This document shows, piece by piece, positions 4,573 to 41,804 of a stretch of DNA of 43,051 nucleotides; position 1 is the first letter of the stretch; each line of letters opens with the position of its first letter. The DNA comes from Octopus sinensis (taxonomy: Eukaryota), in NCBI RefSeq assembly GCF_006345805.1, contig NW_021835050.1, forward strand, positions 1 through 43,051, given 5' to 3'. The notes below the pieces were generated by a model. It was not told where the DNA came from and made no database searches. It was given only the letters and a program-made list of their open reading frames with translations. Both the position numbers and the translations under genes were made by a program.

Positions 4573-5088
4573 AACAGTGGCAACTGTAATAGCAACAGTA
4601 AATACAACAATAACAAAAAGCAATAAAAATAAATAACAATAATATTAAAAGTAGCTCTAAAATAACAACAGTAACAATAATTTCATGGTGTTTTTTGGCT
4701 GAACGTCAGCAATTTTAAGTAGAGGTGGGTGAGGTGTCATAACATTGAGCCCCAGCGCTCAGCTGAGGGAGCGACAAGGTAAGTTACCAGTCTTGAGGTC
4801 GATTCAAATATGAAAGAGACGCAGCGCTAGTGTAATTAACTCTATCGAACACGTATACTTAACGTCCATCACTCCTGGATTTGAATTTACATTTCATACA
4901 TGCATTGTCTGCGTTTTAACTTTTCATGTACTTGCGTGCATATCATTACGCGTGTATGTGTCTATACATATATATATAATATATATATATATATATATAT
5001 ATATATATATATATATATATATATATATATATATATATATATATATATATATATATATATATATATATATATTTATTATATAGAAGTG

Positions 5089-5135
5089 AGCTTCTAAGGA
5101 CTAGAACTTTTCATTCAAGAAAATCTCAGGAAGCT
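5089..5135 (-). ncRNA. Hammerhead ribozyme, family D, degenerate copy
   Basis: Reverse complement of 9927-9977 with several single-base deletions, including one in the CUGAAGA core. Confidence 0.55.
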
Positions 5136-6860
5136 AGTTAACAGAATTTATTGGCATTTATACATTTAGGCAGGTTTAACGGGTGTGTTGGTGGGGGACT
5201 TTTTTGGGGGTAGGCCTAGCGAAAATATCATACTTGGGGGAAGTGGTCAGGAGTCAGTGTTAAATTAGATAGAAGAATAAATAAAAAAATAAATAAAAAA
5301 ATAAAAAAGTAAAATAAAAAAATAAAAAACCTATATATAAAAAAAAAAAACCCTATATTAACAAAAATGGGGAATAGAGTTTTTAGGTAAATACGGAGAT
5401 TCTCACTTATACCTATGCACACATGTATACATACATACACACACATACAAACATATATACATACATACACACATACATACACACCATATATATACACATA
5501 TATATACACTTACACATACACATACATATACATATCTACACATACACATATATGTATACATACACACACTCCATGCATACACGTATACACACATTATATA
5601 TACCACACACGACCTCACATACATATACGCACAGAAAAATATATATACACATACACAACATACTCACATACACGCATACACACACATATCCACCACACAC
5701 ACATGCACACACAGCACTATGTCCCTATATACACTATAGACACATACACACACATATACACACACATACATACATATACATACATGTATATATATAATAT
5801 GTTACCTATGCAAACCTACACATACACACATTATATCTACACATACAAATACAGACCCAATCCCTAATTTTAATTTTATTATCTTCGTTTATTACTTTTG
5901 TTATCTTTGGGCCCGCTTGGTCACAAACATCTTGGCTGTGACAGCCAGTCCATTTATCTGTCTACTGGAAAACAAGCACTCATTCACTCACGCACACTCT
6001 TTAGCACGTACTCTCTCACTCATTCGTACACTCATACACATACACGCAACGCCCGCGTGTTATATTCATAACATACATCCATCTACATACATTCACGTAT
6101 ATATACACATACGTACGCGTACCTACAGATTTATGTCTACACTCTAGAAGGCTAGTCTATATATATACACCAATAAATATAAATACACACACATACATAT
6201 ACACCTACATACAAATACATACATGTATATATATATATATATAAATATATGCATATATATATATATTCACATACATATATACACACACATACACACATAC
6301 ACATATACACACACATACGCATACACACACATATACATATATATACACTACACGCCATACACATGTACATGCGTACCCATACACACACACACCCGCGCGC
6401 GCAGCATAATATATACACATAAGTACACACATGCGTAAAAGTATACATATATCTATGCTTACACATACACACACAACACCACGCCTCCTTATATTCATAC
6501 TTACATGCATACCAAAAAATAAGTAAATAGTAAAATATATATACGCGCAGTTATTCGTACATGCATACTCAAAAAATAATAATAATATAGTATATGTACG
6601 TGCAGTTACCTATTATATAGACGGATACATACATATAAAACTTACACCTATATATAATATATATATATATATATATATTACATATACATACATATAACAC
6701 ATACACATACACATACATATATACATACATATATATATACACACACACACATACACATACATATATACATATATATACATACTTACACACTGTACATATA
6801 AATACACACATAGATAACTCTACGTACCTACATATGCATAACACACGAGCGTACGCGCAT

Positions 6861-8111
6861 TCTATGACGGATCCCACTGTGACCCCCCCCTTCGACGTCA
6901 GCATGGGGTGCTAACGACTCTGCTGAAATAAGTGACCTAGTGGGCCTTTTCATCCTCCATAGGCTGAAAAACCCTATTCACAAGGCCTCTCCGGTGGTCT
7001 TTACCGCGATGACGGCCTTTTTCGGTCGCACCTCCACAAAATAAACCCAGGACCACGGATGGGTTCCGGAAGAATCTTTACACCTTCTTTAAAAACTTAG
7101 GCCTTAGGATGACCTTAGAATCCAACTTAACTAAAGCTAACTTCCTTGATGTCACCCTCGACTTAAAAACCTCACTTTATTACCCGTACCACAAACCGAA
7201 TGAATCCCTTAAATATATAGATATTATTCCAACCACCCCAAAAAATATTTAGATACACTAGTAAAAAGTGTCTCAATTAGAATTTCTAGCCTGTCCGCCA
7301 CGGAAGATATCTTTAAGGCCGCAGCCCCCCCTATTACAACGAGGGCCTGGCCCGCAGTGGCTTCTCAAAAGATAAGATTACCTATACTAGTATAGCACCA
7401 CGCCAACCCAGGAAAATAGACGAAGACACATTAGCTGGTACAACCCCCCCTTCAACCGTGAGGTCGCTACACCTGTAGCAAAAATCTTCTTCACTCTCCT
7501 ACAGAAACACTTCCCCAACCCAACATAAGTACTACACACTATCCTAAATAAGACCACTATTAGACTCTCCTACTCTACCACGCCCAATCTAGCCAGGAAC
7601 CTAGCCAACAACAATGTGAAAAAACTTAACATATCTACTTTTTCCGAGGCCCATCCAACGTCCGATAGCAATTGCAACTGCCCTGATAAAACCACCTGCC
7701 CCCTCAACAACAACTGCCTACAGAGGACCTAGTATATACATGCGAGGTAAGATCAGGCCCTGACGATAAAGAAAATCCTACATAGGATGACGTCAAACAA
7801 CTTTAAGACCCGTTGGTACGTACACACACTCGTTCCGGCGACAGGATAAATCCAACCAAACTACCCTCGCCGCCCACATCTGGTACCTTAAAAAGGAACT
7901 CCATCCCCTTCAAGACCAAGTGGAAACTACTACAGAAGGCGCGCTCTTACCAGGATGCCATACCTGCTGTGACCTCTGCATATCGGAGAGCCTAGAGATC
8001 TTGTTCGCCAAAGGCCCTCTCCTTAACAAAATCTCAGAACACTCCCCACATTGTATGCATAAGAAGTATGCGAACTACAAGAACTATAGACCTACCCGGC
8101 AACCAGATTGA
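6861..8111 (+). pseudogene. Frameshifted, 5'-truncated PLE reverse transcriptase and GIY-YIG endonuclease
   Basis: Cross-frame translation gives FDVSMG, GLYRDDG, NFLDVTLDL, ISWYNPPF, CNCPDKTTCPLNNNC, YIGMT, CDLCISE and LLNKISEHSPHCMH, colinear with the protein at 27140-29261 but from a different family. Confidence 0.9.
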
Positions 8112-39810: not shown

Positions 39811-39924
39811 TCTACGCTGAAGAGAAAAGAAGTTTCGGTAAGATAGAATTATTTATTATTTAATATTTAATATTTAATTCGTATGCTTTCCTTAAAACTT
39901 GATTTCGAAACGTACGTCCGTGGA
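39811..39924 (+). ncRNA. Type I hammerhead ribozyme, family C
   Basis: Same motif. Confidence 0.85.
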
Positions 39925-40685
39925 TAACTAAAAAAATGTATGATAGATTGCAGTCAATTCATTCTCTCTTACCTGTTTGTGCCTTCCAAATGCTGTTTTT
40001 ACTGAGATCTCCCTTTTTAGTAGAAGAAATAGCTATAACCTTGACTGCTATTTCTAAATTCGGTATGTGGTAAGGCAACTCGTTGCTAAACCCTTATTGC
40101 TTAGTATATATATATATATATATATATATATATATATATATATATATATATATGTATGTATATGTATGTGTATGTTATATATGTGTGTATGTGTATATAT
40201 GTGTATATAGGGACTAGTGTGCTGTGTGTGCATGTGTGTATGTGTGTATGTTATATATATTTTTCTGTGTGTATATGTATGTGTGGTCGTGTGTGTATAT
40301 ACATGTTGTATACGTGTATGCATGTGAGTGATGTATGTTGTATATATATATGTGTACGTGTAGATATGTATATGTATGTGAGGTATATATATGTATATGT
40401 GTGTGTGTGTATGTATGTGGTATGTATTATAGTATGTATGTGTGTGTATATATGTATACATATGTGTATAGGTATAAGTGAGAATCTCCTTATTTACCTA
40501 AAACTCTATTTTTATATATATATTTTTTTATTTTTTTATTTATTCTTTTATCTAATTTACCACTGACTCCTTGACCACTCCCCCAAGTATGATATTTTGC
40601 GCTATGCCTACCCCCAAAAAGTCCCCCACCACCACCCCTTTAAACCTGCCTAAATGTATAAATGCCAATACAATTCTTGTTAACT

Positions 40686-40736
40686 AGCTTCCTGAAGATT
40701 TCTCTTGAATGAAACAGTTCTAGTCCTGTAGAAGCT
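40686..40736 (+). ncRNA. Type I hammerhead ribozyme, family D
   Basis: Identical to 9927-9977 and followed by ccttc then (TA)n. Confidence 0.85.
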
Positions 40737-41804
40737 CCTTCTATATATATATATATATATATATATATATTAAGGTATGTAGAAAAATACAACATGGACA
40801 AGAAGGTATAACTCTTAGAAGACGGTACAATAAACATGGACAAGACATTCGAAACCCTCAGTCTTCAGTCAAGAACCGGATCATCGTAGTAATTTCGGCT
40901 GATTAATCTTGACATATATATATATATATATATATATATATATATATATATATATATATATATATATATATATACATACATATACATACATGCATTTATA
41001 TATACAATATATATACATATATGTGTGTGTAATGTATTGATTCCCCTGAGTCTTAAGCATGTACTTCTGCTGTTCTAAAGTGGTATTTCTTAAATGTATA
41101 TATTATCAAGCGTATCATTGTGACTATTAATATTTCCCACCTTTCAGCCTCACCCCATTCCTAATAATCCTAAGTGAATTCTCAAGTACAAATAAATATA
41201 AATCGAATGTTTTATCTACATATTATATATATATATATATATATATATATATATATATACACATATATACATATATATATATATATATTATTATATATAT
41301 ACATATATAATATATATATATATATATAATATATATATATATATATATTATATATAATATATTATATATATATATATAGATATACACATACATATATATA
41401 TATATATATATATATATATATATATATATATATATATATATTATATATATGTCGTTTCTTCTGTGCAACTTTTTACTCTAATGATATATGTATATAATAA
41501 TATATATACATATATATATATATATATATTATATATATATATATGTGTGTATATATATATATATATAATATATATATATATAAGATTTTCTACTTCTCAA
41601 TATGTCGGATTGTTTCCAAGATTTACCATCGCTTTCTATTTACTGGTTGAGTTTATTATTTTCTTTTTCTGTTTTTCATCATTCATATTATTGTCTACAA
41701 ACACACTCGGGCGCGCACACACAGGCGGATATATACATATATGCGTGCTTACTGTATGTATGTATGTATGTATGTATGTATGTATGTATGTTATACGTGT
41801 GTTT

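Follow-up and report, generated by a model that had tools for sequence, protein, structure and literature searches.

The 43,051-nt stretch of Octopus sinensis DNA analysed here (NCBI RefSeq assembly GCF_006345805.1, contig NW_021835050.1, positions 1 to 43,051 of the forward strand; hereafter the window) contains a nest of Penelope-like elements (PLEs) of the Hydra clade and of small non-coding repeats with hammerhead ribozyme motifs, set in (TA)n microsatellites. The window is AT-rich (GC fraction 0.27-0.45) and its microsatellite load is very high (at least 188 rows in the output of Tandem Repeats Finder, TRF); ARAGORN called no tRNA gene in it, and no long open reading frame (ORF) was seen in it outside simple repeats. 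Eight unrelated hammerhead or hammerhead-derived families can be told apart: five of them, A to E, had been pointed out in an earlier, sequence-only reading of the same DNA, and three more, F, G and H, are added here. Families A, D and E belong to three PLE lineages, while the other five are non-coding and occur either as tandem arrays (B and C) or as solo units (F, G and H).

Hydra-clade Penelope-like elements

PLE-A is a full unit of 2.59 kb (2,589 bp) on the + strand (26969-29552), whose 3' end adjoins a (TA)n tract at 29545-29652. It is preceded on the same strand by a partial tandem copy (26334-26968) that comprises the C-terminus of the endonuclease (EN), the 3' untranslated region (UTR) and the hammerhead, and that forms the upstream pseudo-long terminal repeat (pseudo-LTR or pLTR) of the element: 26334-26968 and 28920-29552 are direct repeats, 98.9% identical. 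The EN tail of the upstream repeat was placed by tblastn at 26355-26669, and its left edge adjoins an (AT)n tract at 26263-26333. Coding remnants of the full unit lie at 27140-29252, and tblastn with related proteins covers amino acids 14-715 at 27083-29252. The read-through product, of 698 amino acids, has more than 430 full-length homologues of 700-730 amino acids at 40-50% identity (best E value 8e-200). The ORF is interrupted by about five frame breaks, every one of them in a homopolymer run, and one is a 1-nt difference from the upstream pseudo-LTR, in which the frame stays open. Because the breaks sit in homopolymers, and because the monomers of array B (see below) likewise differ by 1-nt indels, the ORF may in reality be intact and the breaks may be errors of the assembly. 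Near-identical copies at 27600-29100 and 33700-36950 differ almost exclusively by 1-nt homopolymer indels, with hardly any substitutions; the predominance of indels among the A pseudo-LTRs and the B monomers points either to long-read assembly error or to very recent insertion.

The second lineage, PLE-D, is present in three copies. Copy 2 (6834-9982, +) is truncated at its 5' end and keeps the C-terminal half of the reverse transcriptase (RT) together with the EN (6834-8105, about amino acids 330-726 by tblastn, with the motifs GLYRDDGL and CNCPDKTTC), followed by a long 3' UTR rich in simple sequence repeats (SSRs) and a hammerhead at 9927-9977. Copy 1 (5083-6860, -) is inverted and 5'-truncated, consists of the SSR-rich 3' UTR only, and has its 3' end, at 5083, against a (TA)n tract at 4963-5082; its inverted matches to copy 2 run from 5071-5853 to 9994-9209 and from 6679-6860 to 9656-9491. 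Copy 3 is split by the insertion of C into a left part of the 3' UTR (36947-37499, +), where 5773-6345 matches 37500-36947, and a right part (40107-40741, +) with an intact hammerhead at 40686-40736 and a 3' end in (TA)n. The 3' UTR of PLE-D (8499-9645, 5418-6350) is made of about 1.8 kb of compound microsatellites (TATG, TA and CA). These internal SSR tracts are landing sites for other elements, as for C in copy 3, and PLE-D thus both sits in SSRs and carries them.

The third lineage, PLE-E, is known from a remnant at 17793-18776 (+), in which the linker and part of the EN (17793-18083, with the motif CNCRDRHKC) stand about 560 bp upstream of hammerhead E2 (18641-18675), and whose 3' end, at 18776, lies in (TA)n. 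E2 has an intact core and a loop-less palindromic helix III. Two other pieces belong to the same family: E1 (12693-12807, -), a 3'-terminal fragment 5'-truncated inside its hammerhead (12779-12807) and with (TA)n on both sides, and E3 (32090-32223, -), a 3' region with the mutated core CUGUUGA in its hammerhead at 32184-32223. The three form one diverged family, all copies of which end in (TA)n.

Each of the three lineages codes, or formerly coded, for a telomerase-like reverse transcriptase with a putative GIY-YIG-type nuclease C-terminal to a CxCX5C linker, and in each a type I hammerhead motif lies 5-140 nt short of the 3' terminus. Since tblastn finds coding stretches beside A, D and E, these families are the 3' hammerheads of three Hydra-clade lineages, and family E in particular is the 3' end of the third rather than a free-standing ribozyme element. 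This changes the inventory of the sequence-only reading, which had counted two RT-EN regions and five families of non-autonomous ribozyme elements: both regions exist, to which the EN remnant of PLE-E has to be added as a third, and only B and C among the five families stay non-autonomous. The pseudo-LTRs with hammerhead and the inverted insertions that it named as established for PLEs are both found, the former in PLE-A and the latter in the inverted pair of PLE-D.

The published diagnostics of the Hydra clade are a length below 3 kb, a single ORF, an RWK motif, a change of DKG to DKT, a CxCX5C linker, the lack of a CCHH motif, canonical hammerheads and insertion in (TA)n, with a nuclease that has CxxC and CxH around conserved E and N residues (Craig, Yushenova, Rodriguez & Arkhipova 2021, PMC8557442). 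PLE-A contains RMRWKAFFF, SDKTKN and a linker CSCRNKELC. Motifs common to the window and to a consensus of 25 relatives are RMRWK, (S/A)DKT, FDIV.FY.SI, (G)LYRDDG, NFLDV.L, SNHPP, CxCX5C, K.YIGLTE..FK.R..NH, C.LC and C.H, and RWK, DKT, YRDDG, CxCX5C, CxxC and CxH can all be read in that consensus. On the strength of RWK, DKT, CxCX5C, a size below 3 kb, a 3' hammerhead and (TA)n flanks, the PLEs of the window can be assigned to the Hydra clade. They resemble other members in their single ORF of about 700 amino acids, their pseudo-LTR and inverted 5'-truncated arrangements, their 3' hammerhead and their insertion in (TA)n. They depart from the norm in the U4 to C change of the ribozyme core and the frame breaks of PLE-A, and in the unusual length of the SSR-filled 3' UTR of PLE-D. 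Naiad elements share the preference for (TA)n, and in Naiad and Neptune a Zn-finger-like linker has been implicated in microsatellite targeting; however, Naiad has an N-terminal nuclease, CxC and IFD and no canonical hammerhead, and Neptune has a CX2-5CxxC linker and a CCHH motif, whereas the window ORFs have neither the first three features nor the last two.

Pfam returned no RVT_1 match for the ORF fragments, the read-through or the 25 relatives, and a sequence-profile search of the PDB gave nothing relevant. An AlphaFold model of an intact relative (P0002) reached a predicted local distance difference test (pLDDT) score of 87 and a predicted template modelling (pTM) score of 0.82; its structural matches have TERT on top (E values 3e-9 to 1e-6), followed by other RTs, and the protein folds in this model as a telomerase-like reverse transcriptase, as expected for PLE RTs. 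In the C-terminal nuclease, the motifs K.YIGLTE..FK.RY.NH, C.LC..E and C.H are present, and the nuclease region of the P0002 model has the topology bb-aa-b-a (b, strand; a, helix); a separate model of the isolated nuclease domain, with a pLDDT of 31, was not used. Pfam matches to GIY-YIG are weak, with E values of 0.006-0.009, below the cutoff, and occur in two of the 25 relatives. By its motifs, these weak matches and the model topology, the enzyme is a putative GIY-YIG-type nuclease.

An ORF homologous to those of the window, followed by a hammerhead and by (TA)n, was found at five loci (L001-L005) from other assemblies, with partial or inverted copies upstream; junctions with (TA)n are documented for L001, L002, L004 and L005, and one cluster of homologues includes proteins of a cnidarian, the jellyfish Sanderia malayensis. 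One of these loci, L001, has a canonical hammerhead whose helix III, GAAACUCAGAGU, is that of window A, as well as an inverted 163-nt copy; positions 1-3140 of the same locus contain a 1289-nt perfect inverted repeat, and at locus L005 a PIF1/Helitron-like helicase gene lies nearby (7091-8112). Loci L002-L004 carry the D-type ribozyme of the window. Its core and U.U flank are constant among them, and its helices have changed on both strands: stem I is AGCUUC/GAAGCU in window D and UACCAC/GUGGUA or UAUCAC/GUGGUA in the relatives, and helix II passes from UUC/GAA to UCU/AGA or UCC/GGA, which makes compensatory changes in four of six stem I pairs and in two of three helix II pairs. A search of metagenomes with the D-type core pattern gave 120 matches; only three or four are true hammerheads, too few to add covariation power.

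Hammerhead motifs and non-coding repeats

Hammerheads were located with a descriptor requiring a stem I of at least 4 bp, the sequence CUGANGA, a helix II of 3 bp or more in which either side may have one extra base, GAAA, either a helix III of 2 bp or more or a palindrome, no longer than 8 nt, closed by A15.1/U16.1, and a residue other than G at position 17 (H17). It gave 15 matches in six sequence families (six in B, four in C, two in D, and E2, F and G), whereas 100 dinucleotide shuffles yielded 0.05 on average and never more than one. A second scan, in which one core mismatch was permitted and longer helices were required (shuffle expectation 0.01), added both copies of A and the relic H. 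These scans and inspection of the motifs bear out every coordinate proposed earlier for families A to E.

The core C3-U4-G5-A6-N7-G8-A9...G12-A13-A14...A15.1/U16.1, H17 is intact in the six B and four C motifs, in D2, D3, E2, F and G. For D, cleavage is predicted behind the A that stands before GAAGCU. The others are defective. Both A copies, A1 (26873-26935, +) and A2 (29456-29518, +, of the same sequence and 34 nt from the 3' end of PLE-A), read CCGAAGA, with C in place of U4; H has A at G8; D1 (5089-5135, -) is one base short in the core, and its helix III is shortened by the loss of both partners of one pair; E3 has the mutated core given above, and E1 is cut off by (TA)n. Judged from their cores, the window copies of A, H, D1, E1 and E3 are presumably ribozyme-dead relics. 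As an alignment of all families with MAFFT misaligned the 3' halves of the hammerheads, a structure-guided parse was used instead. In all 14 distinct motifs parsed, from the window and from relatives, helices I to III are paired; the core stays constant, and the helices around it are unrelated in sequence. Helix I, an open duplex of 4-6 bp in which no internal loop is apparent, resembles that of the "minimal" PLE variants rather than that of the canonical ones, and a U.U flank on helix II recurs in B, D, G and in the PLE relatives L002-L005. So far as they are reported in PMC7229834 and PMC8557442, the minimal hammerheads of PLE pseudo-LTRs (Cervera & de la Pena 2014) are likewise of type I, stand in the pLTR or at the 3' end, have minimal helices and are missed by standard models. 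A U.U mismatch at the base of helix II is known from HHR_Amex2 of the axolotl, and a short palindromic helix III from dimer-acting amphibian hammerheads and newt satellite-2 (PMC7229834). B, D and G share the first feature with these ribozymes, and C and E the second, with a helix III so short as to imply dimer action; the hosts are different, the sequences are unrelated, and helix II of C is far longer.

Array B is composed of two arms, 99.4% identical, that meet head-to-head at 35250, where they are asymmetric by 17 nt. The left arm (33709-35249, -) holds about 3.2 monomers of 478-481 nt and has its 3' end outward, into (TA)n; the right arm (35252-36942, +) holds about 3.5 monomers and also has its 3' end in (TA)n. 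Hammerheads with intact cores stand at 33835-33890, 34314-34369 and 34795-34850 (-) in the left arm and at 35669-35724, 36147-36202 and 36626-36681 (+) in the right one, the latter with predicted cleavage after 35718, 36196 and 36675. A solo B fragment of 114 nt (21712-21825, -), from the 3' terminus, is 93-95% identical to the array termini and ends exactly as the left arm does, in ...CTCTATACAA followed by (TA)n. As it lies in a different (TA)n and shows eight differences from the array termini, it represents an independent, older insertion. The variants among the eight B pieces are all private, almost all of them 1-nt indels, which argues for a single-template origin of B.

Array C (37541-40106, +) has about 4.3 monomers of 597-602 nt and is preceded by an inverted, 5'-truncated C fragment of 42 nt (37500-37541, -), which corresponds, in reverse complement, to two segments of the monomer and whose 3' end points to the (TA)n on the left. 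Its hammerheads lie at 38014-38127, 38616-38729, 39216-39327 and 39811-39924 (+), with predicted cleavage after 38121, 38723, 39321 and 39918. Their helix II, of about 95 nt, forms in the minimum free energy (MFE) fold, and their helix III is a palindrome, ACGUACGU, whose pairing is worth -11.2 kcal/mol between two copies and -1.6 within one.

Both arrays therefore have the layout seen in the PLEs: an inverted 5'-truncated copy and a forward copy, with their 3' ends outward. Every complete monomer junction has a hammerhead (six of six in B, four of four in C), with perfect core and helices. The monomers are non-coding, with a GC fraction of 0.34-0.35 and a longest ORF of 99 amino acids, on the antisense strand of B, and tblastn finds no similarity to PLE proteins in B or C. 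The circular MFE of the monomers is much lower than that of shuffles (z scores of -4.8 for B and -6.1 for C), and the effect is stronger than on the antisense strands. An exact look-up of the product of the B-monomer ORF, for other genomic copies of B, returned no record, and the B ribozyme sequence had no match in the JGI metagenomes.

The solo units are smaller. F (29653-30038, +) is a 386-nt non-coding unit with (TA)n on both sides, directly to the right of the 3' microsatellite of PLE-A, and its hammerhead (29732-29796, +) has an intact core and the sequence CCAUG-CUGAUGA-U-GGCUG...CAGCU-GAAA-CUAAUUUAGU-A-CAUGG. G is recognised by its hammerhead (32352-32445, -), which lies on the strand of E3 and about 130 nt upstream of it; the core is intact, and helix II, which has a U.U flank, measures about 63 nt. 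H (22470-22800, -), of about 330 nt, has its 3' end against (TA)n at 22372-22469, and its hammerhead fold (22616-22675, -) is perfect but for the single change in its core.

Proposed mobilisation at (TA)n and alternative explanations

Nearly all termini of these elements are anchored in (TA)n. At 14 of 16, TA alternation over the 12 nt just outside the element reaches 80% or more, as it does at 4.9% of random positions (naive binomial P of about 6e-17), and the remaining two have a TA score of 0.73. The sequence-only reading, which had predicted flanks richer in TA than the background, is thus upheld here, and the eleven (TA)n junctions that it listed are all real, the one at 9982 being short and degenerate. 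It was also right in speaking of retrozyme-like arrays: B and C consist of non-coding monomers in tandem, each of which has a hammerhead. Non-LTR retrozymes have been described as non-coding, AT-rich tandem repeats with a hammerhead in each monomer and a proposed circular RNA (Cervera & de la Pena 2020, PMC7229834), and have been seen as non-autonomous derivatives of PLEs (Li, Clavereau & Pollet 2026, bioRxiv 10.64898/2026.07.22.740005). B and C share with them the single type I hammerhead per monomer, the occurrence of solo, dimer and multimer forms, the proposed circular RNA and the proposed dependence on PLEs. The retrozymes of Xenopus resemble PLE pLTRs (bioRxiv 10.64898/2026.07.22.740005), whereas B and C do not resemble those of the PLEs with which they co-reside in the window. 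Here, unlike in both retrozyme papers, the link to PLEs consists of the common (TA)n target and the inverted-partner architecture.

We consider it likely that all the retroelements of this locus use (TA)n as landing sites, and that a PLE supplies the mobilisation of B and C in trans, via RNA processed by their ribozymes. The common target, the insertion architecture and the ribozyme sub-type lead us to infer self-cleavage, circular RNA and a role of the PLE enzyme in mobilisation. By target-primed reverse transcription, the element RNA would be copied from the 3' end that the PLE nuclease exposes in nicking (TA)n, and the inverted partner would arise from a template jump. Hammerheads would cut multimeric or read-through transcripts to unit length, those of C and E probably acting as dimers through their palindromic helix III. 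In the case of B and C, the unit RNA (478 and about 600 nt) could be ligated into a structured circle, which the PLE enzyme would copy in trans for several rounds, so that a tandem array would arise in a single insertion.

Several observations weigh against this scenario. The only full-length PLE of the window, PLE-A, combines frame breaks with a U4 to C ribozyme, so that the window has no evident working helper; the candidate helper RT of the sequence-only reading is a member of the only clade in which insertion in (TA)n is published as a rule (PMC8557442), but this copy of it has a mutated ribozyme core and about five frame breaks, which may be assembly errors. B, C, F and G have no detectable similarity to the 3' regions of PLEs A, D and E of the window or to each other. 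With respect to the usual monomer size of retrozymes, 150-450 nt, F and H lie within the range, but B and C exceed it, even if circles of 150 to more than 1000 nt are possible in principle (PMC7229834). The variants of C are mostly private, but two are common to several monomers. The 3' end shared by the left arm of B and the solo B fragment is equally compatible with a linear RNA of defined end and with a favoured priming site on a circle. TA microhomology occurs at three of five array termini, and we rejected it as a universal feature of these termini. Lastly, Rfam returned no hammerhead row, at the gathering cutoff or permissively (E<=10), for the whole window, for a 7-kb slice with eleven claimed ribozymes or for a 131-nt slice around one of these. 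Of the checks suggested by the sequence-only reading, the descriptor search succeeded and the search with Hammerhead_1 gave nothing. However, the canonical hammerhead of L001, taken as a control, had no Hammerhead_1 match either, and its match to Hammerhead_3 reached 24.8 bits against a gathering score of 48.5, in a mis-registered alignment. As a textbook-canonical hammerhead fails too, the silence of Rfam is uninformative for minimal motifs.

Alternatively, the hammerheads could be inert fossils, or else selfish passengers at the 3' ends of PLEs, that contribute nothing to how the arrays propagate; the locus would then be a graveyard of dead copies. Cores are indeed broken in five of 20 motif copies, no Rfam hammerhead model matches, and Naiad PLEs thrive without hammerheads, which Craig et al. 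suggest may parasitise PLEs (PMC8557442). Yet cores and helices are perfect in all ten monomers of B and C, unrelated families converge on one motif, relatives display compensatory changes, and the excess of structure in the monomers is strand-specific. We hold this alternative to be unlikely.

Somewhat more doubtful is the idea that B and C are ordinary satellite DNA, in which a fragment, PLE-derived or unrelated, landed once and then multiplied as DNA, through unequal crossing-over or replication slippage, with neither RNA circle nor reverse transcription involved. Tandem arrays of near-identical monomers are what such a process produces, the two C variants common to adjacent or non-adjacent monomers fit it, and local amplification once a PLE terminus has become independent has been proposed in bioRxiv 10.64898/2026.07.22.740005. 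Still, unequal crossing-over explains neither the inverted partner of B and C, with both 3' ends outward, nor the independent solo B, whose last base is the same although it lies in another (TA)n, nor the purely private variants across both arms of B.

It could also be argued that the elements create or carry (TA)n instead of targeting it, either because a telomerase-related RT adds TA or because SSRs of the elements expand after insertion. In shrimp genomes, Penelope copies are linked to long (AT)n, and SSRs have been read as travelling with transposable elements (PMC7878876); the 3' UTR of PLE-D is itself full of SSRs. The insertion of C into PLE-D copy 3 offers a comparison of filled and empty sites, and it cuts both ways. 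In D1, the paralogue without the insertion, a short TA tract (about six repeats) stands exactly at the insertion point, so that TA was there already; on the other hand, the tracts that flank C, of about 13 and 24 or more repeats, are longer than the empty one. Against a creation of (TA)n stand also the presence of (TA)n on both sides of unrelated families, the small share of perfect (TA)>=4 runs in the window (6.4%), in which nearly all termini nevertheless lie, and the published interpretation of Hydra-clade insertions as (TA)n targeting across phyla (PMC8557442). This explanation seems to us quite improbable. That the inverted B arrays are a fold-back chimera of long reads, as the 99.4% identity of the arms and their mostly 1-nt indel differences, typical of long-read error, might suggest, is scarcely credible, and we rejected it on the asymmetry of the arms (1541 vs 1691 nt), whose monomer phases differ at the centre (the 17-nt asymmetry) and at the outer ends and whose flanks differ, while the same layout occurs in C, in D and in relatives from independent assemblies.

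Targeting of (TA)n by PLEs, with B and C mobilised in trans, is the explanation that we favour for this locus. An extension of it, to which we lend only tentative credit, is that one PLE clade, Hydra, whose (TA)n target and inverted-partner signature the arrays share, moves the non-LTR retrozymes of animals in trans, and that their arrays stem from single events of rolling-circle reverse transcription of a circular RNA, processed by the ribozyme, at nicked (TA)n. Single events of this kind would explain the private variants, the variable phase of the monomers at the termini and circles as large as 478-600 nt.

As to whether these families had already been described, which the sequence-only reading had left open, the concept is already in the literature: both the targeting of (TA)n by the Hydra clade and the view of retrozymes as PLE derivatives are published, and the evidence at the level of junctions is modestly new. 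In the literature searched, we found no paper that uses a common (TA)n target or an inverted-partner signature as evidence for retrozyme mobilisation. The movement of animal retrozymes has so far been argued from co-occurrence and pLTR similarity, and a 36-kb stretch with eight unrelated hammerhead families in (TA)n and arrays in PLE layout provides testable junctions. The locus offers predicted cleavage sites, circle sizes, an empty paralogous site and a Hydra-clade PLE as candidate helper. Our results also show that this whole class of minimal hammerheads escapes standard Rfam scanning, and they suggest that Hydra-type PLEs and their passengers, by targeting (TA)n, account for part of the association between (TA)n and transposable elements reported for SSR-rich genomes of invertebrates.

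Other repeats of the window

The permissive Rfam search returned hundreds of matches to mir-297, mir-466 and mir-3149, which correspond to (TG/TA/CA)n and to the palindrome centre of B, none of them at gathering score. A dispersed family resembling short interspersed nuclear elements (SINE-like) occurs at 4190-4500, 25100-25500, 31380-31660 (-), 32540-32730 (-) and 42100-42450. It has no hammerhead core, and ARAGORN called no tRNA in it; its copies are composed of a tRNA-type head, GGTTC.GGGTTCAGTCCC, an internal microsatellite and a conserved tail, ...AATAAGTACCAG...CTGGGGTCGAT... A tandem repeat at 23833-24670, without hammerhead or (TA)n flanks, comprises about 4.5 units of 184 bp that are 82-90% alike, and has a tail motif in common with the SINE-like family.

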